A stretch of 64,000 nt of DNA from Octopus bimaculoides (lineage: Eukaryota), in NCBI RefSeq assembly GCF_001194135.2, contig NC_068981.1, forward strand, positions 94,359,343 through 94,423,342. Direction: 5' to 3'. How positions within the stretch are numbered: position 1 is the first letter of the stretch; each line of letters opens with the position of its first letter. Positions 405 to 62,548 of the stretch are shown here, piece by piece. The translations under genes were made by a program, and so were the position numbers. The notes under the pieces were generated by a model. The model was not told the origin of the DNA. It did no database searches and saw only the letters and a list, made by a program, of their open reading frames with translations.

Positions 405-535
405 CTGAAAAGTTTTTGTTTTGATAGTTAAAGATCTCCAAAGTCACTTCTATCATAAGAATGTATGTTCTAATATTCTTTGAAATTGGTGAATCTGATG
501 GCATTGATGTAATTTGATGACAGATATGGGAAATA
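405..535 (-). CDS. Module 11 exon E2 (gene continues left of the window)
   Basis: gcttttctag|T...G|gttagt, 131 nt; [43 protein letters not shown]. Confidence 0.75.
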
Positions 536-3138
536 CTAGAAAAGCAAAACAACAAATTTGAACACATATGAATACTTGATATTGATACATCTCAGTTTTT
601 TCTTTTTTAAATTTAAACTTTAACATACTCTGCATACTCTGAGTGATATCAATCTTAACTTGGCTGCAATTTTATTACTGTTATTAAACCTTTAGCATTT
701 AAACTGGCCATATCCAGCCAAAATATTCTACTTGTTTTCTGTTAAAATCAGCCAGATCCAGCCTATCACACCTAACCTACGATGGCATTCTAAAAACTAA
801 ACAAATACACCTTCAATGTCTCAAAACTATAAAATTAATTCAAAACAACATGAATCAACACAATTACATTTGACAAAGAAATCTGAATGCTAAAGGAAGA
901 TGGCTGAATCAGAGAATACAGGACAAAATGCTTTGTAGAATTACATTGTTTTGTATTCAAAATAAAGTATTGGTAAAGTACTGATGTTGATGTAATTGAT
1001 TATACCCCTTCCATCAAACTCTGTTTTTACTGTGCTGTCAAGAAACAAAGAAACTTAAAACTGATGAGATGCAACTAACAAATGTTAATATCAAAATATG
1101 GCACCAGTGAATTCAAAAACTCCAGAAACTTCACAAACTTCACAATGAAAACTCTGAGTAACACATATATATGTGTGTGTGGGTGCCTTTGTGTTTGTCC
1201 TGAACCACTGCTTGAAAACCAGTGTTGGCTTGTTTACACTGCCATAACTTAGAAGTAGGGTAAAAAGGGACCAATAGAATAAGTACTATGCTTAAAAAAA
1301 ACTTGGCTGATTTTTCAACTAAACCCTTCAAGGTGGTACCCCAGTATGGCTACAGTCTAATGACTGGACCAAGAAAAAGATTAAAGATTATACCATTAAG
1401 TTTTTATCTGATGCATTACTTACTGGGTTTCATTGAGAATTGAACTCATAGCATCCCTCTTATTCAAGTTCCTCACAACATCCTGCATATAACCAATCTC
1501 TGGCTGGAATTGGAACTCATGTGGTATTTTAAACAACGTAGCAAACTGAAAGAAAAAAATGAAAAAATCACATCAATGTAGACAAACAATATTATCATTT
1601 TTAAGTATTATATAAAGGGATGCTGAAAAATTCCTGGATTAAGGGTATTTTCAATGGCCTGGCTGGAGGCCCAACATTCTGAGTTATTTCAAGGGGTTTA
1701 GAAAAACTGAAGGACTGCTGCAACAAGTGTGCACATCTGGGAGAGGAATATGTTGAATAAAATCATAATTAACTGATCCTCCTATATTTTCTTTTACTCA
1801 AAGCCAACAACTTTTCTGCACCCCTCATATACAACAACAACAACAACAACAACAACAATAACAACAACAATAATAATTATAATTGATGAAGAAAATGCAA
1901 GATAGATTTGGCACTAGTCTTTATTCAGTACGATGATTGTTTTGACTCATCCTGCAACTGTCCATTATGGGTAGGATTTTGTGCATCTAATTGTGTTGCA
2001 TCAATCTGTGCTGTTTGTATCTCATCAGGTACATGCATAAAAAAGGAGATGTCCTGCTAGATATACTGAGATGTCCTAGGCATGTTGTCTGTACCTGCTG
2101 TATCAACTAATACAGCAGAATTCCTGAAGTAGACCCCAACCATGGATAACAGATAGCCCAAATTGTGAATATGCTTTATTCAACACACTAATTGACATAT
2201 ACCCATTAGTCCCAAACAATTACATACACACACACACACACACACATATATATACATATACATATATACATATATATATNNNNNNNNNNNNNNNNNNNNN
2301 NNNNNNNNNNNNNNNNNNNNNNNNNNNNNNNNNNNNNNNNNNNNNNNNNNNNNNNNNNNNNNNNNNNNNNNNNNNNNNNNNNNNNNNNNNNNNNNNNNNN
2401 NNNNNNNNNNNNNNNNNNNNNNNNNNNNNNNNNNNNNNNNNNNNNNNNNNNNNNNNNNNNNNNNNNNNNNNNNNNNNNNNNNNNNNNNNNNNNNNNNNNN
2501 NNNNNNNNNNNNNNNNNNNNNNNNNNNNNNNNNNNNNNNNNNNNNNNNNNNNNNNNNNNNNNNNNNNNNNNNNNNNNNNNNNNNNNNNNNNNNNNNNNNN
2601 NNNNNNNNNNNNNNNNNNNNNNNNNNNNNNNNNNNNNNNNNNNNNNNNNNNNNNNNNNNNNNNNNNNNNNNNNNNNNNNNNNNNNNNNNNNNNNNNNNNN
2701 NNNNNNNNNNNNNNNNNNNNNNNNNNNNNNNNNNNNNNNNNNNNNNNNNNNNNNNNNNNNNNNNNNNNNNNNNNNNNNNNNNNNNNNNNNNNNNNNNNNN
2801 NNNNNNNNNNNNNNNNNNNNNNNNNNNNNNNNCAACATACTACTGGATGTGTACCTAATTATTTATAACCAAGTGCTTACTATTGCATGGCAATATCACA
2901 ACTGGGTATTAGGTATGGGTGGGGGTAAATTAGAAATTTACCCAGGATTTATAAGGCAAATAAGAAAATGGAGAGGATATATAATCAACAAACATCAGCC
3001 AATAAACATCCAATTATATCTATTTATTAAATGATCAGAAACATGTGTGAGTGATACAAATTAACGAATGAAATAAGTCAATAACTGCATAAACAAATAT
3101 ATATACATATACATACTTACACACACACACATGCACGT

Positions 3139-3183
<45 letters not shown>

Positions 3184-3786: not shown

Positions 3787-3845
<59 letters not shown>

Positions 3846-5005
3846 TTTGTACATATGGATATGTGTGTGTGTGTGTGTGTATATGTATGTGTGTGTGTTT
3901 TTGTATAAATACGGATGCTACTTTCTGTTTAAAATTCAAACCAGGTAATCCAGATTAGCATGAGGAAATGAAACAATCACTGCATCTACATATCCAATCA
4001 TTTTGTAAAGGGTGGTCTAAAAGTTATGCTACCATTTCATATATATGTACTGGTAAGCTCTTCAGCTTACCAGTTCCAGTCAAACCGTCTCACCCATGTC
4101 AGCATGGAAAGCAGATATTAAATGATGAAGATGATGATGACAATGTATATATTGGTTTCAAATTTTGGCACAAAGCTAGTAAAATTTTAGGGGAGGGGCT
4201 AAGTCAATTACATTGACCCCAGTGTTCAACTGCTACTTATTTTATCTACCCCTGAAAGGATGAAAGGCAAAGTTGACCTCAATGGAATTTGAACTCAGAA
4301 TGTAAAGACATGAAATGCTGCTACACATTTTGCCTGGTATGCTAATGATTCTGCCAGTTGACTGTCTTTATATATGTATATATTAAAAGATAGGTAGTGT
4401 GACTTTTGAGTGACTCTATGCTATACATTGGCAAGCTATTATGGCCAGACAACAATGCTTTAACTCAAATATAGAACTATAGAAACAGCTTTAAAACTAA
4501 CTTGTTTAAATAGTCCAGCAACAACTGAATCCATGTCGAAGTATCCAGTCTGGAGAAAGCTTTTCAAAATCAACTGAGTGGAGGATGACTGCACCAGAAA
4601 TTGGTTTAAAGTTACTTTCCACATGTCTACAAAATAGAAAAAAAAGTAAGAATTAGTTTACATATTTTTATACATACATATTCATTTGTGAGAGTACAGG
4701 TCACCAGGACAATTGGTTACTGAGCAACTAGTATGTTATCGATCATGTGTATCCTGTCAGCAACATAGCATTGTGGCTATAATCAAACCAATGTTCAACA
4801 GTTATGTGCAAGTGTGGCTGTGTGGTATGAAGCTTGCTTCCCAACCACATAGTTTGGGGTTCAATCTCACAACATGACACCTTGGGCAGGTGTCTTCTAC
4901 TATAGCCTTGAGCTGATCAAAGCCTTGTTAGTGGATTTGGTAGACAAAAACTGAAAGAAGCTTGTCATATATTCATATATATGTATGTATGTTTGTATGT
5001 ATGTA

Positions 5006-5044
<39 letters not shown>

Positions 5045-7941
5045 ACACTCCGTCAGTTACAACGACAAGGGTTCCAGTTGATCCAATCAATGGAACAGCC
5101 TGCTCATGAAATTAATGTATGAGTGGCTGACCACTCCACAGACATGTGTACCCTTAACATAGTTCTTGGGGAGGTTCAGTGTGGCACAAAATGTGACAAG
5201 GCTGACCCTTTGAAATACAGGTACAACAGAAACAGGAAGAAAGAGTGAGAGAAAGTTTTGGTGAAAGAGTACAGCAGGGTTCGCCACCCCCACTGCTAGA
5301 TTCCCATGGAGATTTAGGTGTTTTAGCTCAATAAACACTCACAACACCCAGTCTGGGAACTGAACCACGATCCTATGACCGCAAGTCCGCTGCCCTAACC
5401 ACCAGGCCATCGTCACCTTCACTGTTATTGCTACTAGAACATTAATAACTTGTATAAAATGAACTTCTACATAGAACCTTCCAATATATACAGAAATGAC
5501 ACGCACACACTCAACAAAACTTCCTTTCTAAAAAACACTTCCAGCTTTCTAGATACGGCTAATAGAGCTGATGCCACAAACAACGTATGAGGCGGAATGT
5601 TTGCTTATAAAAACTTGTATATGCACACATGAGAGTAAGGGGACATNNNNNNNNNNNNNNNNNNNNNNNNNNNNNNNNNNNNNNNNNNNNNNNNNNNNNN
5701 NNNNNNNNNNNNNNNNNNNNNNNNNNNNNNNNNNNNNNNNNNNNNNNNNNNNNNNNNNNNNNNNNNNNNNNNNNNNNNNNNNNNNNNNNNNNNNNNNNNN
5801 NNNNNNNNNNNNNNNNNNNNNNNNNNNNNNNNNNNNNNNNNNNNNNNNNNNNNNNNNNNNNNNNNNNNNNNNNNNNNNNNNNNNNNNNNNNNNNNNNNNN
5901 NNNNNNNNNNNNNNNNNNNNNNNNNNNNNNNNNNNNNNNNNNNNNNNNNNNNNNNNNNNNNNNNNNNNNNNNNNNNNNNNNNNNNNNNNNNNNNNNNNNN
6001 NNNNNNNNNNNNNNNNNNNNNNNNNNNNNNNNNNNNNNNNNNNNNNNNNNNNNNNNNNNNNNNNNNNNNNNNNNNNNNNNNNNNNNNNNNNNNNNNNNNN
6101 NNNNNNNNNNNNNNNNNNNNNNNNNNNNNNNNNNNNNNNNNNNNNNNNNNNNNNNNNNNNNNNNNNNNNNNNNNNNNNNNNNNNNNNNNNNNNNNNNNNN
6201 NNNNNNNNNNNNNNNNNNNNNNNNNNNNNNNNNNNNNNNNNNNNNNNNNNNNNNNNNNNNNNNNNNNNNNNNNNNNNNNNNNNNNNNNNNNNNNNNNNNN
6301 NNNNNNNTTCTTTTTCTTTTCTTCCTTTCTTTTGTCACTTTTGCTATGAATTAAATTAATGAATTCAACGGGATACACCGTCTGCAAGTAGTTGGGTTCA
6401 GCATATTATCCTCCATTTTCTAATTGTTACACAAATTTTGGGTAAAACCTCCACTTTTACCCGCTCCCATTGATTGCGCCTAGTATAGCACTAGTGTAGC
6501 AATAATTGGGTACCCTCCCAGCAGTATACTGGATAGATACTATCCCTTAGTGGGTTGTACCCCCAACCCCTAACTCTCTCACGTTATATATATATATATA
6601 TATGTATAAATATGAATATGTCTTTGTGTCTGTGACTGTCCCTCCCACCACTGTTTGACAACTAGTACTGGTGTGTTTATGTCCCTGTGATTTAGAGATT
6701 CAGCAAAAGAGACCAATAGAATAACTACCAGGCTTTTAAAAAATGAGTACTGGGGCCAACACATTTTACTAAAACATTTTCAAGGCAGTGCCAAAGCATA
6801 GCGACAGTCTAATGACTGAAACAAGTTAAAGATAAAAGATTGAGTTAAGTCCACAAATCTTTGTGTAGGTACTGCATGCTTGTATAATTCACTACTAGAA
6901 GCAATATTTGCATAATGAAACTAACAAAGAAATTGTTGATTTGCATTTGTGAGTTAAATTCTTCAAGCAAGAAAATGTAGCTCATTGGACTGTGGATATT
7001 ATCTTTAACCCATAAACTGCGATAGGCCACCTCAGTGGCCAACACGACAGTGCGACAGGCCACCTCAGTGGCCAATGCGACAGTGTGACAGGCCACGTGC
7101 ATGGCCACGGAAGTAGGGCATGATCTGACCTAATTTTGATGATGTATAATGTATGCACATGATACCCTTTCCCCCCAGAAACAGTGTAGCCAATCACAGA
7201 AGGTGTTAAGAAACACTGAGTATTTTTTTGCAAGTGATAAATCGATGTCGATCTTTACCCAAAATAGGCTCAGCAGTTCGTGTTACATACAGCAAAATCT
7301 CAGCAGTTTATGCGTTAAGAAGGTTTATTATTGCAAACACCTGCTTGAGAGAAAGCCATAACAAATCAGAGAAAGATATCAGAAAACAAATTTACCTGTT
7401 GTGTTTAATGCAGCAATATCAATTTTATCTGTTGTGATTGGTAGGATATCTGAGAACATCTTCATAAGCATGTAACCAAAACTGTTTAACGAAAATACAT
7501 ATATGTTAATATATAGTTATTATTCAATCAGCTTTAAATGAATAAAGATATTACAATGCATTTAAAATAGATGTTCTTTATCAGCATTTTGTCTGTAAAT
7601 TATGAGTTTGTAAATCAATGATCCTCTAAACATAGTATTTGAGTAAATACATTTACATACATTTATTAAACACACATACACACACAGACAGACATATATG
7701 CACATACATGTACACACATATAGGGGAAGGGATATAAGTGTAATGTCTGTATGTGTATGTGCACGTGTGAGAGAGAAATGAGGAGACTGAGAGAGAGTGG
7801 GAGACTAAGAGAGAGAGAGCAAAAAGAGAATGACATTAAAAAATACGATATAGACAAGAGTGAGAGAGGAAAAGTTAAAAGCAAGGAGAAAGACTAGCTG
7901 GAATAGAAATGGTAAACTAAGGAAAAAAAAGAAAGAGAAAA

Positions 7942-8020
<79 letters not shown>

Positions 8021-11000
8021 GAGCGAGCACGTTGCAAAGAAATGAGATAGAAGAAAAGGGATACAGATGTAAGATGTTTAAAAAACATTATATCATGGTG
8101 AAATAAAATTAGTTTTCTGATTGAATTGTGTAGTTGAAATCTTCAATAATAAGCAATGTATGAAAACAACATTTTGATAGAATATATGTTAAAATTGGAA
8201 TTTTTTAAAGAATTTTTTAGACAGTGTAGACTTTAATAATTACTTTCTTTTAGTAAAAGTTACTTATAAGTAACTAATAAGCATCTTTTGATATTATAGT
8301 ATAGGTATATGCTGGAAAGCCATGTTTGCTACTAGTGCTGTTACACTAAAACTACTTGAAAATCTCAGATGATCATGAACAACAGGAAGAACAAAGTATG
8401 ATAAAAACCATGTTTGAACCTTATGAAATTCCTTGAACAGAACAAAGATGCCAGGACAGCTGCTGTATATAGACCTGTTTTATCAATGTCAATATATAAA
8501 TAAAGATGCAAAATTGGTGATGATAATGATGATGAAAAGGAGGAAAATATACCTATTATTGCTGACTATATAACTGTTCATTATTTCAGGGACAGATATG
8601 TTAGATCGCAAACCTAACAAGTTTGGAATTATATCTTGCAAATTTTTTACTTGATTTAAAATAATTTTCCTCATAAAATCTTCACCACTTTGGTTATTGA
8701 AGAAGCTATTGATCTGTAAGGCAAAATGAGAACAAAATTATAAACCAATATCAAACAGTTTTTATTCTATTTCTATAAAGAAATCATTAGAACACTAAGA
8801 TAATTTTGGTACACATTAAAAATAGAAAGAATGATGAATGAAAATCAGATGAATCAGAAGCTTTATGAAAAGATATACTGAATTAAATAAATTGTCTGGG
8901 AAATTTTACCTTTTTTTCCAAATATTGAGAGTCATACAATTTGACAAGGGCAGAGTAAAAGTCAAAATTGCTGCAAAATGTGGAATTGATAATACTCAGT
9001 ATTTCACTTGGTATGTTATTATATTTTGATGCTTCTTTGGTTAAAAACTTGTTAAATGTTCCATTGTAACAATGTTCCTGAAGTTTTGAGTCCATCATGA
9101 GAATCTTTGACAGCTAAAAGATACACAAGGAAAGTATATAGTAATGTTGGAATGAATAAATAACTTTAGATAAATATTTTGATTTGAGTAAATTAATTCT
9201 TGCTGTGAGAAAATTTTGTTGTGTCTAGGACATTACGCCAATATTTGAGAAAATTGTTTTACATCCATTTTTCCATTGTTGGAGCAAATGTTTTTATAGC
9301 TGTTTGTCTTTCCCATCACTAACCACTCGGCTATAATATCAGTGAAACTGAAACAAGGTAAGTAGTGTGCTTTGACCAGAGGTACAATACAACAGTTGAA
9401 GACTTATGGTCAGTAGTCTGTTGCTAATATTTGATTTAAGTTAAATATCAACCACATCAACATTACCATTGAGAAAACATGCAAATATTACAAGTACAAC
9501 CCACTTCCTTTCACTAGGTAATTAAAAAAGTTCCAAGTGATTGTCATGAAAATATTATAACCTAGTAGCTGATAGATAAATGGGCCATATTACATTGCCA
9601 ACATTATACTGCATTCTAAATCCTTAATTCTTCATAGATAATTACAAGAAAATTTAAATATGCTCTAAGAGCTGTATAATTCAGTGTTTTAACCCCAGAG
9701 GTAATGCATAAATGATTTCATTAGTTTCTAGCTATTGGTTCAAATTCTTCTATAATCCTTCTTGAAGAAGATAGTAAGCACCTATTCTATCATATTTCCT
9801 TTTTTCTAGCTAAGATGGCTAATGGAGTATTCAAATAGAAAAAAAAGAAGAAGCAATGATCTGATCTTACTGTATTAGGAAAATGATAATAATTTATAAC
9901 CAAAGAATGTTTAGTAATTTACAGTTATCAAAGATTATATTTCCCTAAAGATCATTTTTTGTTGATACCTAATGATAATAATATTTTTAATTCAGGTGAA
10001 GACCAAAGAATTACGCAAAATACTGATTTAAATTTTTGGCACAATGCCAGCAATTTCGGGGGATGGGGTAAGTTGATTACATTGACCCCAGTGCTCAACT
10101 AGTACTTATTTTACTGAGCCCGAAAGGATGAAAGGCAAAGTCAACTTAGACAGAATTTGAATTCAGAACATAAAAACAGGTGAAATGCTGATGAGCATTT
10201 TGCCTAACATGCTACCAATTTTGTCAGCTTGCCACCCTGGAATAACTCAAAATATCAGCAATACCATGCATGATGAAGAATTACATAATATGTTCGTAGG
10301 TCTGATGTTTTGTCTGTTAAAACACATTAACCACCTCACAACCACCAGAGGTACATTTTTCATAATTTGAGAAAATATTTTATTTTGTATCGTTGATATG
10401 GGTTCAAGGATATTTAAATAACTTGGGTATTAAATATTAAAGTTTGATTATGAAATGTAAAAATGCAAAAACAAAAAAAAAAATTACATTTCCTTGTAAT
10501 TAACTCTTTAGCATTTAAATTGGCAACATCCAGCCAAAAATTTCTATTTGTTTTATATTCAAACTGGCCAAATCCAGTCCCTCTCATCTATCCTATAATG
10601 TCATACCCAAAGTAAACAGTCACATTATTGGGGTTTCAAAGTTGCAGGATAATGCATGATTAATTCAAAACAAAGCACTAAATTTGACAGAGTAACCTGA
10701 ATGCTAAAGGTTAAACAGTATACAAGTGTGATTTTGGTAGAAGACTAAAGTTTTTAATTGTGAATTCCTTTTGTATTAAATATCTAGCATTAGTATTCAG
10801 AAGACAGTATGTTCTTTAAAATACATTAACTAAACTCCACAAATTAATAACTGTGATTTAACTGTGAATATGACTAGACTAATCAACTTGATGCTAACTA
10901 TATTGTATTGAGTTAAAATCTAGAAACATTTACTGTCTGTTAAGTAGCCTCTAATTATGACTATATGAAAATTATTCATTTTTGTAAAATAACATGGCTT

Positions 11001-13404: not shown

Positions 13405-13459
<55 letters not shown>

Positions 13460-47800: not shown

Positions 47801-48789
47801 ATCACCAATCTGGGAATGAAAACCTTGACCTCCTGATAGTAAGAGCAGCACACTAACCACTAGGACAATACAATCTGTACAATAGAAGTAGTCAGACTGT
47901 CTGTGGAATTTTTGATTTTCTCAGACTGTTGCATGTTTAAAAGTTTCAAATAGATTAAAGAACAATGAATAATGCTCAAGAATACATACCTACAATACGT
48001 TTTAGATTGGGAATTAAAAATTCCAAAACCTTCTGTTCTATATAGACTTTCATATTTTGATCTGGAATTCCTGTTATATTCAATGTAGCCAAGAATTGCA
48101 TTACATAACCATTGATTATCTGAGGACTGAAAAAGAGGAAATGCATTGAGAATTAAATTGATGAATATTCTAGAATTGAAGTATTTCATTTAAAAAATAA
48201 GCAATAAAGATGTATGAAGTTGTGAAAATCAGTTAGAATAAGTAAAGCTAAATTTCCTTGATATAGTGTTTCTGATTTGTATTGTAAACAACGTACAGGA
48301 TGTATTAGAGAATATTTGTTCTGTTCTGAACTCAGTTTTAGAGTAATGGAATAAAACATTTTGTGGATGATATTATAAATGATACATATATGTATATACG
48401 CTGTCTGGGGGCATGGTGGTTATAGATGAGGGCTATATATGTGTGTGTGAATATATATCATCATCATCATCATCATCATCGTTTAACGTCCGCTTTCCAT
48501 GCTAGCATGGGTTGGACGATTTGACTGAGGACTGGTGAAACCGGATGGCAACACCAGGCTCCAGTCTGATTTGGCAGAGTTTCTACAGCTGGATGCCCTT
48601 CCTAACGCCAACCNNNNNNNNNNNNNNNNNNNNNNNNNNNNNNNNNNNNNNNNNNNNNNNNNNNNNNNNNNNNNNNNNNNNNNNNNNNNNNNNNNNNNNN
48701 NNNNNNNNNNNNNNNNNNNNNNNNNNNNNNNNNNNNNNNNNNNNNNNNNNNNNNNNNNNNNNNNNNNNNNNNNNNNNNNNNNNNNNNNN

Positions 48790-48829
<40 letters not shown>

Positions 48830-54800: not shown

Positions 54801-57800
54801 GTAGTTCATCTATGGAGATAGTGAGGTACAAGACTCTTTCAGGAATATGTGGTGAGTGTCATTGTACAGTTAAAGAACATGAGTTTGATATTGTACATTA
54901 AAAGATATTCTTAAAGTGTCTGTTCATACATATAGTTGATATCTAGCATGAGTTCTGTGTGTGGAATATTATAAAGGAATAAAAACAAAGAGACTACAAC
55001 CTTTATATGAGAGTGGTTGGTTGGCACTCTGTCGGTTTTGATGACAAGGGTTCCAGTTGATCCCATCAACGGAACAGCTTGCTCGAGAAATTAATGTGCA
55101 AGTGGCTGAGCACTCCACAGACACATGTACCCTTAATGTAGTTTTCAGGGAGATTCAGCGTGACACAGAGTGTGACAAGGCTGGCCCTTTGAAATACAGG
55201 TACAACAGAAACAGGAAGAGTGAGAGAAAGTTGCGGTGAAAGAGTACAGCAGGGTTCGCCACCATCCTCTGCTGGAGCCTTGTGGAACTTTAGGTGTTTT
55301 TGCTCAATAAACACTCACAATGCCTGGTCTGGGAATCGAAACCGTGATCCTACGACCGCGAGTCCGCTGCCCTAACCCCTGGGCCATTGTGCCTCCACTA
55401 TATGAGAGTAGCTAGATATGACAGCAAGTATTGCACTGAAGGGAGAGAGTGGAAGGAAGCATTACTAAACCTTAAAATATAGCAGAGTTGATAGTGTAAG
55501 AGTTGGAGATGCAGCAATGGTGTGAATTGATGAGAAGCTTCCAATTCAAGAATTGTAAAACGAATGGAAATCATAGATGATAATGAATATGGTCAATCTT
55601 GAAATAAGTTCTGATAATTGTTTTAAATGCCAACTACTACAAAATCTTAATGACGGTATGTGGGGAAATCTTAGGTTTAGATAAAAGTTATAAATTTTTA
55701 ACATACTTGGCAAGTTTCGCAAGTAAGTCTTCTCCTGTTATGTTGATAAAATATTTGTTAAAGGAATCCAATGTCAAATTTGTGTTATCATTCCATATGA
55801 ATTTTGGAGGCTGCATCACCAAATAACCAATTAATGATTCCAGTTTCTTTCTAGACATCTCATATGCTGTGTAGTTTACTGAAAGTTTTTCACTCAATGT
55901 ACCATTTTCAAAAAGTTTAAACTGAAAATATTAGTTTATAAATATATAAGGTAACATTCTTATCATTAATAGCAAGAAAAAATTATAAACAAAGTTTCAT
56001 AGCACTTAACTGGGTAATTGAAATATTATATTTCAATTGTTTATATTTCTGTAGCAAAAGAATTATACTAGAATCAGATCAATAAGAAAATATTTGAAAT
56101 ACATTCTATTTTCATCTAGGAATCTTCAAATCAGAGTAGCTTAGTCTTAAGATACAAAATAGCATTAATCTATCTGTCTGTCTGTCTGTCTGTTTGTCTA
56201 TCTAGGTCGTCCCTCAGGACACCCCAAGACTGTTTCCACATGTTTTCCCCATTCATCTCAATCTTCCATAATGGTCCTCAACTCCTGTATCCCTTCCATA
56301 CCAGGATCATGTTGAGACAAAGTGGGTATTGTAAAAAAGGAAAACAAAAGGGGTTTCACATTATATACCGTGTATCTATAAAACATTGAAGTTATACATT
56401 TGATTAATGATGAAATAAAGGTGGTGAGCTGAAAGAATCATTAACACACTAGATAAACTGCTTAAGAGCATCTTTTCCAGTTTTAAGTTCTGAGTTCAAA
56501 TTCCACCTAGGCCAACTTTGCCTTTCAACCTTTCAGAATTAATAAAATAAGTACTGTCAAGTATCTGGGTTGATGTAATCAGCTGAGCCTCCCTAAAATT
56601 TCAAGCCTTGTGCCTATAGTAGAAAGGATTAATGGTGAAATAAATTTAACAGGTAGCATAGAGAAGAATAATTAAAAGTTCACAAAATCTCACCATTTCC
56701 CAAAGACTGCTGAAACCAGGAAGTGTCTCCTCTAATTCTTGTAAGAGGTTTTCAAAGTTAACTGGTCCTATCAGGTCACATGCTGTTTGTATAGTGCTTT
56801 TATCTTTAAAGTATGGGAACAGTTTTTGGAAAAGAGTCATATTGTAACACATCTTTTCCCATAGAGTCTCATCTTCAATAAATGGTAGAAACTGTGGAGA
56901 AAATATACAACAGATATATTATAATCTAAATAATTTCAATATAAGTTAAAGATGTATCGATATAATAGTGCAGCTGCACTTATAAACTTAGTGAATTTTG
57001 ATTGTCTTTAAGTAATATCGTGTTTGGTTGTCTTTTCTATATTATCTTTTTAAACCACTACTTTGCTTAACACATTAAAATATTAGTATATGAAACAAGT
57101 AACTGAAACACTTTTTAATATGAATGCTAATTTTATGCCAAGGCTCATAGTAAAAGACCTAGGGTATCATTTTTGCAGGTGTTGTGGATGAGTGATAAAT
57201 CTGGAATACAAAGTAAATAGTATACCTGCCTAAACAAAAACAAACCAAAAACAACAATTTGTTACTGAACAGTTAGCTGGAGCCTTTGAAGTTTAGATCT
57301 TAAAAAGTTTAGGTCTCAAAAATACAATGATCAATATACTTGATAACATACTGTATTGCAGAGCATTCTAACTCCTCTTTGTGTTCATGAATCCCCACAC
57401 CCTCATTCTAAAAGAAGTATACATAATAACAGTTTCTAAGAAATATGTTGATAGCATTTCATTATCTATTTAATGTTGTCATCAAATTGGCAAATACTCA
57501 AGTAAAAAAAAATCTGAGAGATCAATTCAGATAAATTCTATCAAAAGTATGAATTGATTTTTTAACATGTTCTTTCTCAACATTTCCCATGGACATTATC
57601 ATGTTGAAGTCTTATCATTCTTATATTGAAATAAACTATCTGGTTTTGATAGTTTATTTCTTGTAACTATGTTGAATGTAGAACAGTGGTAAAAATGAAA
57701 TAGGAATAAAAATAATAACATTTGATTTCATTTCTTTTTGTTAACAGACCAGTTTTATGGTGATAATTCTAGAAATTTTGATAGTTTATTCTTGATTTTG

Positions 57801-60800
57801 TTATCTATTATTGTGGAAAGAAATATAGTCGTTTGTCTTGGATTCATTAAGAGTATTATTAATTTTACTTATTGGAAATGAAAATCAGATCATTTTCTTT
57901 CTTTTACACTACTTACCCTCTCAGGATTTATAAACATGTCTAAAGCAGTTGCAGCAAACAATGAAGAAATTTCTGGTGTAATTTCAACCTGCCCAAGAAG
58001 CTTCCTGAGTTCTGTAGAATTTATATACTCAAACATATTGAATGAACCAGATGCTGAAACAGAGTGTATTGAATATTTTTGATTTTAAAAATGTAACTGC
58101 ACAATATTCTTATATGGAAACAAAGGAATATGAGCAAGAGTTAGTATCTGTGGTACATAATTTTGAAGTTGAACATAATTACTGACTACCAAAATATGAT
58201 CAAATATATATAAAAAAATATATTTTAATGATATTGAATGAGAAGTACATTCAAAACTCAGTTTCTTTTCACTTTTATTTTAAGCTAATTTTGCATATCA
58301 ACTTCGCCTTCCTGGCATTTGTGCCACTGGCACATGAAAAGACATTCGAGCAAGATTGTTCGCTGCCTTCCTGGCACTTGTGTCAGTGGCACGTGAAAAG
58401 ACATTTGATCAAGATCGTTGCCAGTGCCGATGGACTGGCCCCTATGCAGGTGACACATAAAATACACCATTTCTAGTGTGGCCATCACCAGTACCGCCTG
58501 ACTGGCCCTCGTGCCGGTGGCACGTAAAACACCCACTACACTCTTGGAGTGGTTGGCGTTAGGAAGGGCATCCAGCTGTAGAAACTCTGCCAAATCAGAT
58601 TGGAGCCCGGTGTCGCCTCCTGGTCCACCAGTCCTCAGTCAAATCATCCAACCCATGCTAGCATGGAAAGCGGACATTAAACGACGATGATGATGATGAT
58701 GATTGCCAGTTATCCACAAAGAATCAAAAGCTGATGAGGTCAATGCATGCTTATAAAAATCGTACCTTTGGAGACATGTGAAAAACTTCATCTAACAAGC
58801 AACATCAGAGTACTTCTACAAGGCGATCATACGAGCTTTTTAAGGTTGGTAATGAAATATTAACATTCAACTCAAATTACATGCAGTCAAATGATACTTT
58901 CTCTTAGGGATCTTATGGATAAAGTATTTCCTAATTTATATGTCAATTTCACTGATGTAAACTGGCAATGTGAAAGAGTTATACTAGCTCCAACTAATGA
59001 AATGTTTTATAAACTCAGTCATGAATTTCTTCAAAAGTTAACAGATATATTAGAAATGATTTTTCAATCAATTGACAACAGTTGATCAAGATCAGGTTGT
59101 TCAATACCCTGTTGAATTTCTGAACACATTTAAACCCACTGGGATGCCACCACATAACTTGACACTAAAACTGGGCGCTCCCATTATGTTGCTTAGGAAT
59201 CTTGACTCATCTCACCTGTTGCTTGCTCACATGTTGGAAGCAGCAACAATTTATTCATTTTGACACAAACAGAAAATTACACAATGTATATTATTTGCCC
59301 TGAGGTGCTTCAACATTGACAGATTTTCAGTTTGAAATTCTATTATCATTACAATTTGGATATTTTTCAATAAAATATAGATATTTTGAAATAATTATGA
59401 AAATATATCTTTATATTTGTTTACTAAACTGAATAAGAACAGCAGTAACTCAGGCAATGCTGGGCCATTCAGGTAGTATATATATATATATATANNNNNN
59501 NNNNNNNNNNNNNNNNNNNNNNNNNNNNNNNNNNNNNNNNNNNNNNNNNNNNNNNNNNNNNNNNNNNNNNNNNNNNNNNNNNNNNNNNNNNNNNNNNNNN
59601 NNNNNNNNNNNNNNNNNNNNNNNNNNNNNNNNNNNNNNNNNNNNNNNNNNNNNNNNNNNNNNNNNNNNNNNNNNNNNNNNNNNNNNNNNNNNNNNNNNNN
59701 NNNNNNNNNNNNNNNNNNNNNNNNNNNNNNNNNNNNNNNNNNNNNNNNNNNNNNNNNNNNNNNNNNNNNNNNNNNNNNNNNNNNNNNNNNNNNNNNNNNN
59801 NNNNNNNNNNNNNNNNNNNNNNNNNNNNNNNNNNNNNNNNNNNNNNNNNNNNNNNNNNNTATATATATATATGTATGTATATATATATATATATACATAC
59901 ATGTGATATATATTTACACATGCACATACATGTATGAAATTATATATATGTATAATTTCAAAGGAATTCAGGAAATACTTACCAGAAATAACTTCTAGAT
60001 TTGCATTGATAAACTCAATGAATTTTTGTTCCACAAGAATATTGGTATTTTGCATTTCTAATCCAGTCATGTCACCAATCATTTCAATAATTTTCATTAT
60101 ATTTATCTCCAGTTTAGTACTAAAACAAAAGAAAAGATAAAAAGGGAATATATATTTTATATTAATTTATAGGAGACATATATTTTGTTCAGAAATGTTT
60201 TTTTGTACACTGACAAGTTTTACTTTAAGAGAAAGAATAAGCATTCCTCACAGGTATTTCTAATGTAGCCAAATATCATCGTGAACATTTCTGCTCTAAA
60301 TAATCTAGAATTCATTAAAGGTTATTAAATCTTGAAGGTGATTATTACCTGAAGTAGTTGTATCATACGGTTTATCTTTTATGTTATAAAGAATGCGTAT
60401 AAGTTAAGTTTATCTTTAAGCTAGAGATGAAAAAAAAAAGAAATTCTTTCGGCAGCATATGACCAATCATATAACTTTGACTATAAACATATTTTTCCAA
60501 CTTATTGTCATTACAATTCTTGTTTTAACATGTTTAACTCATAATTTTGAGCCTTCAATGCAACATGTCAGCACATTTCAATGTTGTATTATCTTGTCAG
60601 AGTCACATCTTTAAATCTAGCCTCACAACTTTCTCTATATCTTTTGTTGACCTTCATACGTTTTTTTACTACTAGACTTTCTTGAAAGCTCTAAGGTAAA
60701 ATTTCATCAGTGATATTGTATTCATAGAGTATATAAAGAGTGATTTAAAAATTGGTCACTTTTTCAACATATACAACATAACATTATCTAAGAAAGTGTT

Positions 60801-61674: not shown

Positions 61675-62548
61675 NNNNNNNNNNTCAGTGCACTTTCACA
61701 CTCAATATTTATTCCAAGCAGGAGAGAATTTCTATCATCCTAGTTTCCAGACCACCAGACCATGTGATTTCGATCTTATTGGGCACTTGTTTGCCAGGCA
61801 TGGCGGTAGTCTGACCTTGCTTACAATATATAAAAAATACAGTGTCATAAAATCACTGATTTTGTAAAACATTGTAAGGTGAACATCATAACACAGTAAT
61901 CTTAAATGATGCGTTTATACAAAAAGATGAAAAAAAACCTTCCTTAATATTAATCAGACTCAAGGTGGTGAGCTGGCAGAATCATTAGCATGCTGGGCAA
62001 AATGCTTAGCTGCATTTCATCTGTTTCTACCTTCTGAGTTTAAATGTTGCCAAGGTCAACTTTACTTTTCCTCTTTTGCTGGCCTTGTGTGAATATTAAT
62101 GAATATTTATCAAACTCCATTAAGGATACAAAGGAGCAGAAACCTATACTATAGGTAGCAAAATCTTGTGTGCTGATCAAAATAATGAGATAAATAAAAA
62201 TGTTAGTTTTTAAAAAATTAGTGAATGTTATCAGTGCCTGGAATATAAAAATACACAGAAATAGCAAAAAAAAAAAAAAAAATATTATTGATAATGTAGT
62301 GTCGCATACTCTTACCTTGATACCATTAACTCTTGTTCAAGTTCTTTTAGCTTTTTTTGTAATATTTCAAATGTATTTCCATAAGCTTTGGAATCCAACC
62401 AGTTGTTGTTTGAACTTATGAAGAATTGTGGGGGATTTTTTGTTAAAGAATCCATTAAATTTTGGAACTGGAACATTTCTTTAACAATTTCAAAGTAACT
62501 GACAGTTCTATGAATATTTTCTGGATCAGTTGTCAGGAGAACATACAT
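405..62548 (-). CDS. Internal 40-exon segment (about 2155 aa) of a giant secreted or membrane protein built from about 11 tandem modules of roughly 230 aa; possibly an ABCA-type transporter with an expanded extracellular domain
   Basis: All 40 exons have polypyrimidine-AG acceptors and GT donors, and adjacent exon phases match. Lengths sum to 6466 nt (3x2155+1) with no stop. Modules are homologous and carry many N-x-S/T sequons. No start, stop, TM helix or Walker motif lies in the window. The ABCA assignment is only by remembered similarity (about 0.5). Confidence 0.88.
688..896. mobile_element. piggyBac-like MITE
   Basis: TIR cctttagcatt...aatgctaaagg; homologous to 10500-10714. Confidence 0.65.
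1424..1545 (-). CDS. Module 11 exon E1
   Basis: ttttctttcag|TTT...CA|gtaagt, 122 nt; [40 protein letters not shown]. Confidence 0.78.
1612..1831 (+). mobile_element. Mariner deletion derivative
   Basis: TA-flanked inverted ends (gggatgctgaaaaattcctgg / aagccaacaacttttctgcacccct) with a remnant of the transposase C-terminus (...EYVE*). Confidence 0.65.
2280..2833. other. Assembly gap (others near 5647-6307, 17686-17788, 20472-20650, 38655-38848, 48614-48789, 59495-59859 and 61675-61684)
   Basis: N runs, mostly adjacent to microsatellites or SINEs. Confidence 0.98.
3240..3600 (+). mobile_element. Penelope-like GIY-YIG endonuclease fragment with one stop
   Basis: [36 protein letters not shown]...W(TGA)[35 protein letters not shown]. 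Confidence 0.8.
4150..4370 (-). mobile_element. tRNA-derived SINE family S2 (minus copies also at 10025-10232, 20651-20750, 22210-22400, 26200-26597 (two), 32805-33012 and 35895-36030)
   Basis: ggtttcaaattttggcaca...ttgaccccagtg...aagttgacc...tttgaactcagaa homology. Confidence 0.8.
4502..4626 (-). CDS. Module 10 exon E3 (no E4 found; could lie in gap 2280-2833)
   Basis: ctattttgtag|AC...CAA|gttagt, 125 nt; [41 protein letters not shown]. Confidence 0.8.
4812..4970 (+). mobile_element. tRNA-derived SINE family S1, 5' half
   Basis: tgtggctgtgtggt (A box) and ggttcaatc (B box); multiple copies in the window. Confidence 0.8.
7021..7107. repeat. 33-bp minisatellite, about 2.6 units
   Basis: gayaggccacctcagtggccaa..cgacagtg units. 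Confidence 0.9.
7396..7481 (-). CDS. Module 10 exon E2
   Basis: ttcgttaaacag|T...G|gtaaat, 86 nt; [28 protein letters not shown]. Confidence 0.75.
7943..8020. repeat. (AG)n microsatellite
   Basis: Directly visible. Confidence 0.95.
8553..8713 (-). CDS. Module 10 exon E1
   Basis: ttgccttacag|ATC...AG|gtatat, 161 nt; [47 protein letters not shown]. Confidence 0.83.
8910..9113 (-). CDS. Module 9 exon E4 (Cys pair)
   Basis: atcttttag|CTG...AAG|gtaaaa, 204 nt; [59 protein letters not shown]. Confidence 0.87.
10500..10714. mobile_element. piggyBac-like MITE (second copy)
   Basis: ttaa-ctctttagcatt...aatgctaaagg-ttaa, i.e. TIRs with TTAA flanks. Confidence 0.7.
11035..11138 (-). CDS. Module 9 exon E3
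   Basis: gtttttttacag|AC...GTA|gtgagt, 104 nt; [34 protein letters not shown]. Confidence 0.83.
11294..12160 (+). mobile_element. Degenerate Tc1/mariner transposon
   Basis: TA-cagggtgtttgaattaaattga left end with a similar inverted right end; transposase remnants (QQDS.P.H, FWPP..., [16 protein letters not shown]). Confidence 0.75.
12180..13316. mobile_element. Non-autonomous Tc1/pogo-like element containing an hAT-like MITE and an internal duplication
   Basis: aagttgaccc/aagtcgac subterminal repeats at both ends; end acacgtataaacggt; cagtggttcccaaac...tttgggaa at 12897-13012. Confidence 0.5.
13905..13966 (-). CDS. Module 9 exon E2 (short)
   Basis: ctatttttcag|C...A|gtaagg, 62 nt; [20 protein letters not shown]; supplies the needed phase 2-1 link. 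Confidence 0.65.
14768..14930 (-). mobile_element. S1 SINE 5' half (others at 18170-18320 and 30600-30730; 3' halves at 1190-1388, 6620-6840 and 20272-20465)
   Basis: ctttcagtttccgcctaccaaatccacacacaaggctatagtagaagacac homology. Confidence 0.75.
14992..15179 (-). CDS. Module 9 exon E1
   Basis: ttaatttacag|AGA...AT|gtaagt, 188 nt; [46 protein letters not shown]. Confidence 0.85.
16454..16551 (-). CDS. Module 8 exon E3 (no E4 found downstream)
   Basis: atatttttcag|GA...ATA|gtaagt, 98 nt; [32 protein letters not shown]. Confidence 0.75.
16608..17410 (-). mobile_element. Two tandem composite S1 SINEs
   Basis: Each copy has a 5' half, an internal (TA/CA)n tract and a 3' half (cagtcatttgactg...gacaaacacagac). 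Confidence 0.85.
18355..18672 (-). mobile_element. tRNA-derived SINE family S4 (partial copy at 47690-47865)
   Basis: Head atggctcaatggttagagcattgggctcacaatc; shared aaagtgtcttgctcaagaacacaac. Confidence 0.65.
18863..18993 (-). CDS. Module 8 exon E2
   Basis: cttcttttacag|A...G|gtaagt, 131 nt; [43 protein letters not shown]. Confidence 0.83.
19473..19669 (-). CDS. Module 8 exon E1
   Basis: ctcttatttaaaag|CGT...AA|gtatgt, 197 nt; [40 protein letters not shown]. Confidence 0.83.
21292..21486 (-). CDS. Module 7 exon E4 (Cys pair)
   Basis: gattttttag|ATT...AAG|gtaata, 195 nt; [56 protein letters not shown]. Confidence 0.86.
22471..22598 (-). CDS. Module 7 exon E3
   Basis: gatattacag|AT...CAA|gtaagt, 128 nt; [42 protein letters not shown]. 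Confidence 0.85.
22960..23620 (-). mobile_element. Degenerate RTE-like reverse transcriptase fragment
   Basis: Remnant [15 protein letters not shown] resembles the AFVDFxKAFDSV motif; many stops. Confidence 0.45.
23699..23841 (-). CDS. Module 7 exon E2
   Basis: aacttcacag|C...A|gtaagt, 143 nt; [47 protein letters not shown]. Confidence 0.83.
24113..24567. repeat. Long inverted repeat (foldback/MITE-like), arms about 190 bp
   Basis: ttattaccagtttgaat...ctcctcttcagtcac pairs with gtgactgaagaggag...attcaaactggtaataa. Confidence 0.92.
25483..25682 (-). CDS. Module 7 exon E1
   Basis: gttttttcag|ATA...GG|gtaatg, 200 nt; [38 protein letters not shown]. Confidence 0.85.
26602..26720. repeat. (AAT)n microsatellite (also 32697-32772, 33013-33073 and 35840-35899)
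   Basis: Directly visible. Confidence 0.95.
27096..27305 (-). CDS. Module 6 exon E4 (Cys pair)
   Basis: ttcctttacag|ATT...TCT|gtgagt, 210 nt; [58 protein letters not shown]. Confidence 0.9.
28825..28961 (-). CDS. Module 6 exon E3
   Basis: gtgtttccag|AA...AGG|gtatgt, 137 nt; [45 protein letters not shown]. Confidence 0.9.
29113..29540 (+). mobile_element. Composite S1 SINE
   Basis: tRNA head, internal microsatellite and 3' half. Confidence 0.8.
30856..31013 (-). CDS. Module 6 exon E2
   Basis: ttctctttcag|T...G|gtaaag, 158 nt; [52 protein letters not shown]. Confidence 0.86.
31637..31851 (-). CDS. Module 6 exon E1
   Basis: ttctttcag|ATG...AG|gtaaca, 215 nt; [45 protein letters not shown]. 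Confidence 0.88.
32471..32686 (-). CDS. Module 5 exon E4 (Cys pair)
   Basis: tacttctgcag|GTG...AAG|gtagga, 216 nt; [72 protein letters not shown]. Confidence 0.9.
33078..33660 (+). mobile_element. R4/Dong-type non-LTR retrotransposon 3' fragment
   Basis: [19 protein letters not shown] zinc-knuckle remnant, then restriction-like endonuclease remnants ([23 protein letters not shown]); abuts an (AAT)n tract. Confidence 0.75.
34428..34567 (-). CDS. Module 5 exon E3
   Basis: ttcttctttcag|AG...AAG|gtaaga, 140 nt; [46 protein letters not shown]. Confidence 0.9.
35482..35630 (-). CDS. Module 5 exon E2
   Basis: cttccttttag|A...G|gtaaga, 149 nt; [49 protein letters not shown]. Confidence 0.87.
36315..36768. 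repeat. Two interleaved inverted repeats
   Basis: 36315-36420 pairs with 36601-36708, and 36540-36600 pairs with 36709-36768. Confidence 0.85.
36817..37087. mobile_element. Tigger/pogo-like MITE with an internal 14-bp tandem repeat
   Basis: TA-cagtaatccctt...gaggggttactg-TA; (ggttcacctatcat)x4 at 36841-36900. Confidence 0.7.
37408..37925. repeat. (TATG)n tracts flanking the RTE fragment
   Basis: Directly visible. Confidence 0.95.
37560..37866 (+). mobile_element. RTE LINE 3' end
   Basis: [27 protein letters not shown]...[18 protein letters not shown]; 3'UTR ends in catcatcat. Confidence 0.8.
38198..38400 (-). CDS. Module 5 exon E1
   Basis: aattttcag|ATG...AA|gtatgt, 203 nt; [43 protein letters not shown]. 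Confidence 0.92.
38453..38620. repeat. (TCTG)n-type microsatellite
   Basis: Directly visible. Confidence 0.95.
38860..39480 (-). mobile_element. Highly degenerate LINE endonuclease-like fragment
   Basis: Weak resemblance to the APE C-terminal half ([17 protein letters not shown]). Confidence 0.3.
39505..39640. repeat. Purine-rich imperfect tandem repeat
   Basis: gggatgggagaggaataggg motifs repeated. Confidence 0.7.
40056..40253 (-). CDS. Module 4 exon E4 (Cys pair)
   Basis: ctttcatcag|CTC...TTG|gtatgt, 198 nt; [66 protein letters not shown]. Confidence 0.93.
40806..40933 (-). CDS. Module 4 exon E3
   Basis: ttttcttttag|CA...AGA|gtaagt, 128 nt; [42 protein letters not shown]. Confidence 0.9.
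41820..42490 (-). mobile_element. Degenerate Penelope-like linker plus GIY-YIG fragment
   Basis: [29 protein letters not shown] followed by frameshifted GIY-YIG-like segments ([26 protein letters not shown]). Confidence 0.7.
44545..44684 (-). CDS. Module 4 exon E2
   Basis: ctcttttgcag|T...G|gtaaat, 140 nt; [46 protein letters not shown]. Confidence 0.92.
45111..45325 (-). CDS. Module 4 exon E1
   Basis: atcttttcag|TAT...AA|gtatgt, 215 nt; [43 protein letters not shown]. Confidence 0.93.
46531..46728 (-). CDS. Module 3 exon E4 (Cys pair)
   Basis: ttgcatcag|ATT...ATG|gtaata, 198 nt; [66 protein letters not shown]. Confidence 0.93.
47094..47230 (-). CDS. Module 3 exon E3
   Basis: cttttcttccag|GA...AGA|gtaagt, 137 nt; [45 protein letters not shown]. 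Confidence 0.92.
47990..48126 (-). CDS. Module 3 exon E2
   Basis: tctttttcag|T...G|gtatgt, 137 nt; [45 protein letters not shown] (a different frame from the ORF track entry). Confidence 0.92.
49033..49244 (-). CDS. Module 3 exon E1
   Basis: atcttttcag|TAT...AA|gtatgt, 212 nt; [43 protein letters not shown]. Confidence 0.93.
49830..50027 (-). CDS. Module 2 exon E4 (Cys pair)
   Basis: ttccatcag|CTT...ATG|gtaatt, 198 nt; [66 protein letters not shown]. Confidence 0.93.
51020..51156 (-). CDS. Module 2 exon E3
   Basis: ctttctttcag|AA...AGA|gtaagt, 137 nt; [45 protein letters not shown]. Confidence 0.92.
51646..51788 (-). CDS. Module 2 exon E2
   Basis: tctttttcag|T...G|gtatgt, 143 nt; [47 protein letters not shown]. 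Confidence 0.92.
53230..53720 (-). mobile_element. Highly degenerate CR1/L2-like LINE fragment
   Basis: Higher-GC block with weak LINE-like translation. Confidence 0.3.
53990..54385 (-). mobile_element. Composite S1 SINE
   Basis: Same arrangement as 17008-17410. Confidence 0.85.
55023..55398 (-). mobile_element. tRNA-derived SINE family S3 (second copy at 5043-5420)
   Basis: Minus-strand head gtggaggcacaatggcccaggggttagggcagcggactc...ggtttcgattccc; two homologous copies of about 375 bp. Confidence 0.85.
55707..55921 (-). CDS. Module 2 exon E1
   Basis: attttcag|TTT...AA|gtatgt, 215 nt; [49 protein letters not shown]. Confidence 0.92.
56694..56891 (-). CDS. Module 1 exon E4 (phase 0-0, Cys pair)
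   Basis: tctccacag|TTT...ATG|gtgaga, 198 nt; [66 protein letters not shown]. Confidence 0.93.
57917..58053 (-). CDS. Module 1 exon E3 (phase 1-0)
   Basis: ctctgtttcag|CA...AGG|gtaagt, 137 nt; [45 protein letters not shown]. Confidence 0.92.
58320..58700 (+). mobile_element. Repeat ending in an RTE-like (GAT)n tail (minus copies at 48458-48613 and 30155-30420)
   Basis: ggttggcgttaggaagggcatccagctgtagaaac...acccatgctagcatggaaagcggac...gatgatgat. Confidence 0.75.
58740..59210 (+). mobile_element. Helitron PIF1-like helicase fragment
   Basis: [10 protein letters not shown], then after a frameshift [35 protein letters not shown]. Confidence 0.85.
59983..60119 (-). CDS. Module 1 exon E2 (phase 2-1)
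   Basis: ttttgttttag|T...G|gtaagt, 137 nt; [45 protein letters not shown]. Confidence 0.9.
60905..61030. repeat. Imperfect hairpin of about 125 nt
   Basis: gtccttt...ctcctgtgacatcttca...ctatctca / tgggatag...tgaagaggtcacaggag...aaaggac. Confidence 0.8.
62316..62548 (-). CDS. Module 1 exon E1 (phase 0-2)
   Basis: cctttgtag|ATG...AG|gtaaga, 233 nt; [43 protein letters not shown]; the PPxF motif is shared with other E1 exons. Confidence 0.88.

Follow-up and report, generated by a model that had tools for sequence, protein, structure and literature searches.

A stretch of 64,000 nucleotides from Octopus bimaculoides (RefSeq assembly GCF_001194135.2, contig NC_068981.1, positions 94,359,343 to 94,423,342 of the forward strand), referred to as the window, was analyzed. 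It very probably represents an internal part of one giant transporter gene of the ABCA subfamily (ABCA13-like), which is located on the minus strand and falls within the first extracellular domain (ECD1). The spliced model consists of 40 exons with 6466 nt in total, runs from 62548 to 405, and encodes 2155 residues with zero stop codons. Its unit is a module of approximately 215-240 residues encoded by a quartet of exons (E1 to E4); modules are numbered from M1 in the direction of transcription. A first-pass annotation had described a stand-alone hidden giant protein. The same exons are assigned here to the interior of ECD1 of a giant ABCA transporter, the gene of which continues past both window ends.

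Giant relatives and the link to ABCA transporters

A collection of 1.84 billion representative proteins was searched with a profile of M1-M7; a single junction residue encoded by neither exon's frame was omitted from four rows of the profile. The search resulted in 16 matches, and the named proteins among them are all called hypothetical, unnamed or uncharacterized. The following matches are referred to in the text.

P0001: Argonauta hians GAB1599091.1, 4510 residues, 20 matched stretches
P0011: Argonauta hians GAB1599092.1, 1115 residues, 5 module matches
P0002 and P0017: Acanthosepion (cuttlefish), 1170 and 1587 residues
P0003: Owenia (annelid) CAH1795285.1, 3359 residues
P0004: Ptychodera (hemichordate) XP_070556625.1, 6292 residues
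P0005: Sinanodonta (bivalve) KAL3877832.1, 4286 residues
P0007: Potamilus (bivalve), 1522 residues
P0008: Argopecten (scallop) XP_069125419.1, 2878 residues

A bacterial surface protein (P0016, original E 8.8e-4) was a false positive in the first local profile iteration; it was removed and the iteration was repeated.

In Sinanodonta P0005, the modules are followed within one chain by ABC2_membrane_3, two ABC_tran domains and R1_ABCA1, and the stretch directly past the repeats aligns to ABCA1 354-865 and ABCA4 368-880 at approximately 1e-90. Four other proteins (P0003, P0004, P0008 and P0011) start with an ABCA N-terminus and the first transmembrane helix (TM1); P0011 was matched to ABCA4 6-261 at 4e-22, and 7.4 kb separate its end from P0001, which follows downstream on the same strand. 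In Argopecten, a gene for ABC2_membrane_3 is located 292 bp past the repeat gene on the same strand, followed by a gene reading ABC_tran ... R1_ABCA1. In Ptychodera flava, the repeat gene for 6292 residues (L002 10001-86767) is followed 254 bp later by a same-strand ABC gene for 4923 residues; if both are one gene, the protein would exceed 11,000 residues. The ABCA N-termini, the adjoining ABC halves and the intact P0005 together indicate single giant ABCA genes that were cut up by annotation. In at least four invertebrate genomes, the giant ABCA gene is currently split into two or three "hypothetical proteins".

Profile matches place the module exclusively in ECD1 of ABCA-type proteins, and the array is located between positions equivalent to approximately 261 and 368 of ABCA4. 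Such an ECD1 comprises several thousand residues: at least 2155 in the window, 5625 in the two Argonauta fragments, and 6292 ahead of the ABC part in Ptychodera. The Ptychodera flava repeat gene also carries one C-type lectin domain inserted among its 27 modules.

Orthology to Argonauta was established by tblastn of P0001 against the window. The matches are collinear: residues 1228-1297 correspond to M1E1, 3719-3953 to M5, 3952-4194 to M6 and 4203-4416 to M7, and the tail of P0001 matches the first two exons of M8. Whole modules are 42-52% identical, and single exons reach 62%; cuttlefish matches to the window are much weaker than those of Argonauta. Based on this collinearity, the window corresponds to roughly the last third of an Argonauta-type array plus what follows it, and the part of ECD1 expected 5' of the window amounts to approximately 2300 residues (P0011 and the first 1227 of P0001).

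A stand-alone secreted or matrix protein that consists of helical modules only and is unrelated to a transporter would account for the lack of a transporter domain in the window and for the gene models of Argonauta, cuttlefish, Owenia, Ptychodera and Argopecten, which also end without ABC domains. These models, however, are visibly fragments that start with the ABCA N-terminus and TM1; ABC halves follow within 300 bp on the same strand, the Argonauta repeat protein is preceded by an ABCA N-terminus, and array and full transporter are one protein in Sinanodonta. In the window itself the frame is open at both ends: an acceptor precedes M1E1 and a phase-1 donor follows the last exon, so that the gene leaves the window on both sides. 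We therefore regard a stand-alone protein as very improbable and retain the assignment to a giant ABCA transporter.

Origin, fold and possible role of the module

Across phyla, only the two cysteines of the module are invariant, with one pair per module. The first-pass annotation had not recognized a named domain, and this was borne out. Pfam-A searched with M3 gave only DUF6327 at E 0.046, below the cut-off, and Pfam on P0001, P0002, P0003, P0007 and P0008 gave no family over the repeat region. Sequence-profile searches of the PDB with the module returned only chance or designed helical bundles, and Foldseek against the PDB (cut-off E <= 0.001) gave best E values of 1.4 and 0.5 for models of one and two modules, respectively. 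A word-indexed protein search with M3 and with a 35-sequence cross-phylum alignment gave no matches; it also misses P0001, which belongs to the searched collection and has 8-residue words in common with the query, and is thus uninformative on absence. The same type of search with the Sinanodonta ECD1 core and first transmembrane domain (TMD1) returned only three unnamed fragments.

A relation to ordinary ABCA proteins was detected by targeted profile comparison. The local profile iteration also extended to the ECD1 segment that comes first after TM1. When restricted to internal modules, the profile detected the TM1-proximal segment of Ptychodera at 1e-8 and ABCA4 105-244 at 2e-5 (one-sequence test). 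The internal modules were also compared by hhalign with an alignment of the TM1-proximal segments of four giant ABCAs and ABCA4, resulting in 95.3% probability and E 2.4e-8 over 107 columns with the cysteine pairs aligned. As judged from these profiles, the module is a relative of the ECD1 segment next to TM1 that occurs once in ordinary ABCA proteins. Introns interrupt the module at profile columns 59/105/151 in the window; the corresponding positions are 59-62/105-106/148-152 for the scallop and 57-63/105-106/146-152 for the hemichordate. Due to these common positions, the exon quartet must be at least as old as the split of the lineages, or was copied as a unit throughout.

Structure prediction was performed with AlphaFold. 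A single exon-defined module was modelled poorly (predicted local distance difference test score, pLDDT, 58), since its boundaries do not coincide with those of the folding unit. When two modules were modelled together from a cross-phylum alignment of 28 rows, the mean pLDDT was 73 and the model was almost purely helical, in agreement with the helical modules proposed earlier. The model is confident at approximately 95-270 and 325-457 and weak at approximately 45-95 and 280-320. These blocks define a predicted folding unit that consists of the second half of E2, E3, E4 and the first approximately 40 residues of the next E1, with a putative variable linker at the E1/E2 border.

In the structures of ABCA1, ABCA4 and ABCA7, ECD1 and ECD2 jointly make up an elongated domain outside the cytosol, with a tunnel that accommodates lipids. 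In the octopus protein, the 40 exons very probably encode approximately 2155 residues of ECD1 between TM1 and the conserved ECD1 core before TMD1. The array would have arisen by serial tandem duplication of the exon quartet from ancestral ECD1, and its units, presumably glycosylated and stapled by disulfides, could form a long helical extension of the extracellular or luminal domain. This array may serve as a stalk that holds lipids or binds partners and, in addition, guides the sorting of the transporter. Such a role would fit the mouse protein, because the long N-terminal region of mouse ABCA13 is needed for vesicle localisation and cholesterol internalisation (PMC7948424). According to the same authors, this region is without homology or conserved domains (PMC7948424), and a 2026 review describes the ECD of ABCA13 as abnormally large and unexplored (PMC13161189). 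A wider proposal, possible but doubtful, is that the approximately 225-residue module is the ancestral ECD1 building block of ABCA13-type transporters across Bilateria, which would include the vertebrate N-terminal region, derive from the TM1-proximal segment, and set stalk length by copy number (7 to >27).

Several points weigh against the assignment to a giant ABCA13-like transporter. The window is without a transmembrane helix, ABC2_membrane_3 or ABC_tran, and the transporter identity is owed to orthology and to neighbour genes in other species; in Argonauta the link is seen from the N-terminal side, through P0011. All exons and junctions were predicted from genomic DNA alone. Zero vertebrate proteins were found among the 16 matches of the octopus-only profile, and "ABCA13-like" denotes a likeness, not a phylogenetic placement versus other ABCA paralogs. 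Run against the whole PDB, the module profile gave no significant match to ABCA1, ABCA4 or ABCA7, and Foldseek gave no ABCA ECD match for the module models; the homology between module and ECD1 is therefore carried solely by the targeted profile comparison. The functional part, a stalk-like ECD extension with a lipid-holding, partner-binding or sorting role, is a tentative proposal by analogy.

Gene model, module number and window sequence

An independently derived exon model was identical to that of the first-pass annotation. Since both ends (62548 and 405) match the earlier span exactly, the earlier model of one long spliced frame of tandem four-exon modules with 40 exons and 2155 residues is considered reproduced. 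For gene prediction, splice matrices and a codon table were trained on M1 to M8E2, followed by a phase-aware chain search, which recovered all training exons and proposed downstream exons. In the final model, seven weak extras of the chain search were dropped and two boundaries were picked by phase. The dropped candidates (36149-36087, 33565-33413, 26596-26553, 18566-18465, 11448-11299, 5567-5511 and 1034-945) have low coding scores and fit no module; those at 36149, 33565 and 26596 break up modules whose exons align contiguously to Argonauta.

The exons of the final model are as follows; all are located on the minus strand.

62316..62548, minus: M1 E1, 233 nt, phase 0 to 2; acceptor present; ortholog Argonauta P0001 1228-1297
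59983..60119, minus: M1 E2, 137 nt, phase 2 to 1; run of N at 59495-59859 begins 124 nt past the donor
57917..58053, minus: M1 E3, 137 nt, phase 1 to 0; FNMFEYI...NPER
56694..56891, minus: M1 E4, 198 nt, phase 0 to 0; ETLWEKMC...C...LPGFS, Cys pair
55707..55921, minus: M2 E1, 215 nt; motif, splice sites
51646..51788, minus: M2 E2, 143 nt; splice sites, phase
51020..51156, minus: M2 E3, 137 nt; splice sites, phase
49830..50027, minus: M2 E4, 198 nt; Cys pair
49033..49244, minus: M3 E1, 212 nt; motif, splice sites
47990..48126, minus: M3 E2, 137 nt; splice sites, phase
47094..47230, minus: M3 E3, 137 nt; motif, splice sites
46531..46728, minus: M3 E4, 198 nt; Cys pair
45111..45325, minus: M4 E1, 215 nt; motif, splice sites
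44545..44684, minus: M4 E2, 140 nt; splice sites, phase
40806..40933, minus: M4 E3, 128 nt; exon hidden Markov model (HMM)
40056..40253, minus: M4 E4, 198 nt; exon HMM, Cys pair
38198..38400, minus: M5 E1, 203 nt; exon HMM; ortholog P0001 3719-3782
35482..35630, minus: M5 E2, 149 nt; ortholog P0001 3788-3838
34428..34567, minus: M5 E3, 140 nt; exon HMM
32471..32686, minus: M5 E4, 216 nt; Cys pair; ortholog P0001 3886-3953
31637..31851, minus: M6 E1, 215 nt; ortholog P0001 3952-4036
30856..31013, minus: M6 E2, 158 nt; splice sites, Argonauta alignment, profile match
28825..28961, minus: M6 E3, 137 nt; exon HMM, Argonauta alignment
27096..27305, minus: M6 E4, 210 nt; Cys pair; ortholog P0001 4121-4194, 55% identity
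25483..25682, minus: M7 E1, 200 nt; exon HMM; ortholog P0001 4203-4260
23699..23841, minus: M7 E2, 143 nt; splice sites, chain search
22471..22598, minus: M7 E3, 128 nt; splice sites, chain search, profile match
21292..21486, minus: M7 E4, 195 nt; Cys pair; ends ...NVRKK; ortholog P0001 4352-4416, 62% identity
19473..19669, minus: "M8" E1-type, 197 nt; coding; aligns to Argonauta and cuttlefish protein tails
18863..18993, minus: "M8" E2-type, 131 nt; junction with "M8" E1-type confirmed by P0001 alignment
16454..16551, minus: putative "M8" E3-type, 98 nt; ends ...NPLI; from gene-model search only, without homolog support
14992..15179, minus: putative "M9" E1-type, 188 nt; splice sites, chain search
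13905..13966, minus: putative "M9" E2-type, 62 nt; splice sites, chain search
11035..11138, minus: putative "M9" E3-type, 104 nt; splice sites, chain search
8910..9113, minus: putative "M9" E4-type, 204 nt; Cys pair
8553..8713, minus: putative "M10" E1-type, 161 nt; donor uncertain, model search preferred 8651
7396..7481, minus: putative "M10" E2-type, 86 nt; weak acceptor
4502..4626, minus: putative "M10" E3-type, 125 nt; splice sites, chain search
1424..1545, minus: putative "M11" E1-type, 122 nt; chain search
405..535, minus: putative "M11" E2-type, 131 nt; phase-1 donor; weak E2-region profile match at 0.011

The four recurring exon types were seen in the minus-strand open segments. Exon sizes range from 62 to 233 nt, and the recurring sizes reported earlier were found again (E4 198 nt in M1-M4; E3 137 nt in M1, M2, M3 and M6). 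All exons are bounded by an AG acceptor preceded by a pyrimidine tract and by a donor resembling GTAAGT/GTATGT, and the phases cycle as described (E1 0 to 2, E2 2 to 1, E3 1 to 0, E4 0 to 0); the 24 exons of M1-M6 alone join into 4191 nt free of stops. In a six-frame scan, all array copies of the motifs PPKF, FNM..YI, NPER, ETLW, LPGF and W.K.C were located on the minus strand in recurring order. Cysteines total 17, consisting of eight pairs (E4 of M1-M7 and of "M9") and one residue in the last exon, and 22-31 residues separate the members of a pair, exactly as noted in the first pass. The frame carries 55 N-x-S/T sequons versus 24.3 +/- 4.4 expected by composition, a 2.3-fold enrichment that none of 2000 shuffles reached. 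The cysteine pair per module, the enriched sequons and the position of the homologous array in ECD1 make the proposed extracytosolic location likely at the sequence level.

A furin-type dibasic motif spans the M7E4/M8E1 junction (...NVRKK|RDASS; 21292-21306 and 19655-19669, minus strand). Its position is kept in Argonauta (NVRRKRESE) and in cuttlefish (GRQKRDVSS), which suggests a conserved proprotein-convertase cleavage site within the extracellular domain, as predicted from the motif.

The number of modules was examined with HMMs of the exon types, each built from three modules; the search space was the complete set of 3385 six-frame segments of the window. Recovered copies were E4 of M4 (1.6e-32) and M5 (1.6e-12), E3 of M4 (6e-15), M6 (4e-5) and M5 (1e-4), E1 of M5 (6e-11) and E2 of M1 (7e-8); all of these additional copies were on the minus strand and followed the expected order. 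E4 of M6 (9e-6) and E1 of M7 (0.007) were recovered in a second round. Protein identity is 38-57% among M1-M4 and 26-32% between these and M5 or M6; by BLAST, M7 has no significant similarity to any other module in the window. A non-cephalopod profile was built from annelid, hemichordate and bivalve modules and contains no sequence of the window or of its cephalopod orthologs. Each of M1-M7 is detected by it at 1e-12 to 4e-15 (M7 at 1.5e-13). Since each of the seven is matched by this independent profile, seven modules are certain. The earlier figure of about 11 copies thus holds for M1-M7, whereas M8-M11 are coding but not demonstrably modules: similarity of later modules to M1-M4 was recovered for M5-M7 and not for M8-M11. 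Against the non-cephalopod profile, M8-M11 gave in-register matches only (0.14, 0.07, 0.67 and 0.003), their hhalign scores were inside the range of shuffled sequences, exon-level profiles had no matches past M7, and the E4 exons of M8 and M10 were not found in the window.

The region 405-19669 could accordingly be a decayed, partly non-functional remnant or be mis-modelled, with a transcript that skips much of it. Besides the missing profile similarity and the two absent E4 exons, some weak splice sites and a coding score per kb about half that of the upstream part favor decay. The upstream scores are, however, inflated since the training set lies there. The chain search was untrained on 1-18860, and the downstream approximately 19 kb scored 153.7 on the minus strand versus 23-28 in the other three orientations. 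The frame stays open through 12 exons with the correct phase cycle, and alignments spanning the M8E1-E2 junction were obtained with Argonauta (8e-20) and cuttlefish (8e-7). In bivalve homologs, distal ECD1 is likewise weakly module-like. Decay or mis-modelling is therefore unlikely, though the most credible of the alternatives considered, and the region is read here as coding.

One-to-one best matches to the numbered Argonauta modules were M1/A6, M5/A18, M6/A19 and M7/A20, whereas M2-M4 and the eleven modules A7-A17 match many-to-many. The central block therefore holds 3 modules here (M2-M4, 40056-55921) versus 11 in Argonauta, which indicates lineage-specific expansion or concerted evolution. 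Module copy number differs greatly between lineages, with 27 module matches in Ptychodera, 25 in Argonauta (20 in P0001 and 5 in P0011), 15 in Owenia, and 11 each in Argopecten and Sinanodonta. DNA identity between modules of the window is approximately 70-87% and extends into introns, as expected of genomic tandem duplication. For M3 and M4, E1 with approximately 320 bp of flanking intron is 86.6% identical over 539 bp (45040-45573 versus 48959-49492) and the remaining exons are approximately 70-75% identical; the excess looks like gene conversion or partial re-duplication.

Due to the phase pattern 0-2, 2-1, 1-0 and 0-0, the gain, loss or skipping of whole modules leaves the frame intact, and this symmetry would let copy number change freely. 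The array might then mainly be a source of isoform diversity, in which phase-symmetric modules or single E4 exons are skipped and ECD length or partner binding is tuned. Module boundaries and E4 are indeed phase 0-0, and P0001 modules at 2157-2647 are without E4, by annotation error or possibly by skipping; every module of the window, on the other hand, has intact splice sites and open frames. We consider this rather improbable, a little more so than decay of the downstream region. In total, four Argonauta modules (P0001 2157-2647 and 2879-3046) end near profile column 160 without the E4 part, and exon skipping, annotation error or real loss could be the cause.

The window is AT-rich (about 32-33% G+C). 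There are eight runs of N, not six, in the 64 kb, with 59495-59859 and 61675-61684 also inside the span. All eight are intronic in the 40-exon model and at least 124 nt away from the nearest exon, so the reading frame is never carried over a gap. At the gaps at 61675, 59495 and 48614, the flanking exons are consecutive exon types within one module and nothing can be missing. The same applies in type to the intron with gap 17686, between the E2-type and E3-type exons of "M8", of which the latter is only putative. At gap 20472, the Argonauta protein runs directly from the M7 ortholog into sequence matching M8E1, and nothing appears to be missing. Whole modules could be hidden in gap 38655-38848 (intron between M4E4 and M5E1), and gap 2280-2832 is the expected place of E4 of "M10".

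Given these gaps, the repeats might be an artefact of assembly, with haplotigs collapsed or wrongly duplicated in a draft scaffold that contains gaps; one copy of a 154-bp repeat even adjoins the gap at 48614. Modules with 26-57% protein identity and approximately 70-87% DNA identity are far more diverged than duplicated haplotigs would be, a separate Argonauta ortholog exists for each of M1, M5, M6 and M7, and collapse could only reduce the copy number. This explanation is thus extremely improbable, the least credible of those considered, and the modules are taken as genuine tandem copies.

Rfam and tRNA scans of the window gave no matches. Two families of interspersed repeats were observed. 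The first is SINE-like (resembling short interspersed nuclear elements), approximately 200-280 bp long and 70-82% identical, and all its copies are intronic. The second is up to approximately 400 bp long, 70-84% identical and intronic, with two copies adjoining at 16582-17400.

4121-4357, 10019-10236, 26383-26661, 32740-33075, 51888-52092, 56415-56631, 62926-63168, both orientations: SINE-like family
4814-5026, 14729-14922, 16582-16976, 17001-17400, 20244-20471, 29113-29536, 53985-54386 (also 1163-1389, 6585-6841): second family

A dispersed pair is located at 5043-5423 and 55022-55399 (383 bp, 83% identity), and an inverted dispersed pair at 48460-48613 and 58551-58703 (154 bp, 93.5% identity), one copy of which adjoins gap 48614-48789. 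Long intronic microsatellite tracts are present at 37300-38010, 32690-32800, 7650-8100 and 29650-29930. One trinucleotide run directly precedes the acceptor of M5E4 (32686) and is read as poly-Leu in the open segment of this exon.

Comparison with known systems

The gene family is known, and database proteins without a name are orthologs of the locus, which is thus no hidden new protein. No literature description was found for the repeat unit, its derivation from ABCA ECD1, the conserved exon quartet or the copy-number range, nor for a modular repeat structure of ABCA13 or a molluscan ABCA13; the limited coverage of these searches makes this weak evidence of novelty.

To our knowledge, ABCA13 is the largest ABC protein and among the least understood. 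The vertebrate proteins (human 5058 residues, mouse 5034 residues) resemble the present case as giant ABCA proteins with the excess length in a domain-less N-terminal region. By the title of Prades et al. (2002), as cited in PMC7948424, the extracellular domain of human ABCA13 is encoded in part by a 4.8-kb exon. As far as this title goes, the 4.8-kb exon differs from the quartets of 62-233-nt exons found here, which is a difference in gene structure and not a disproof of orthology.

The closest relatives are P0001 and P0011 of Argonauta hians, which are collinear with the window and share the module, the cysteine pair and the dibasic site after M7. They differ by 11 central modules versus 3, and by a split into at least two unnamed gene models. 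The giant ABCA models of Sinanodonta, Argopecten, Owenia and Ptychodera have the same tandem module, with the ABCA N-terminus and/or ABC halves attached or adjacent, but only 12-20% identity to the octopod modules. ECD1 of ABCA1, ABCA4 and ABCA7 aligns with the flanks of the array in homologs, and the module appears related to ABCA4 at approximately 105-244; ordinary ABCA proteins have one such segment versus at least seven in the window.

Together with these relatives, the locus would give the extracellular region of giant ABCA proteins an anatomy, with a bounded repeat unit, an invariant cysteine pair and conserved introns. The repeat unit has a traceable probable origin in ordinary ABCA ECD1, and the module can be used as a testable structural unit, as a profile for vertebrate ABCA13 and as an aid to the repair of gene models.

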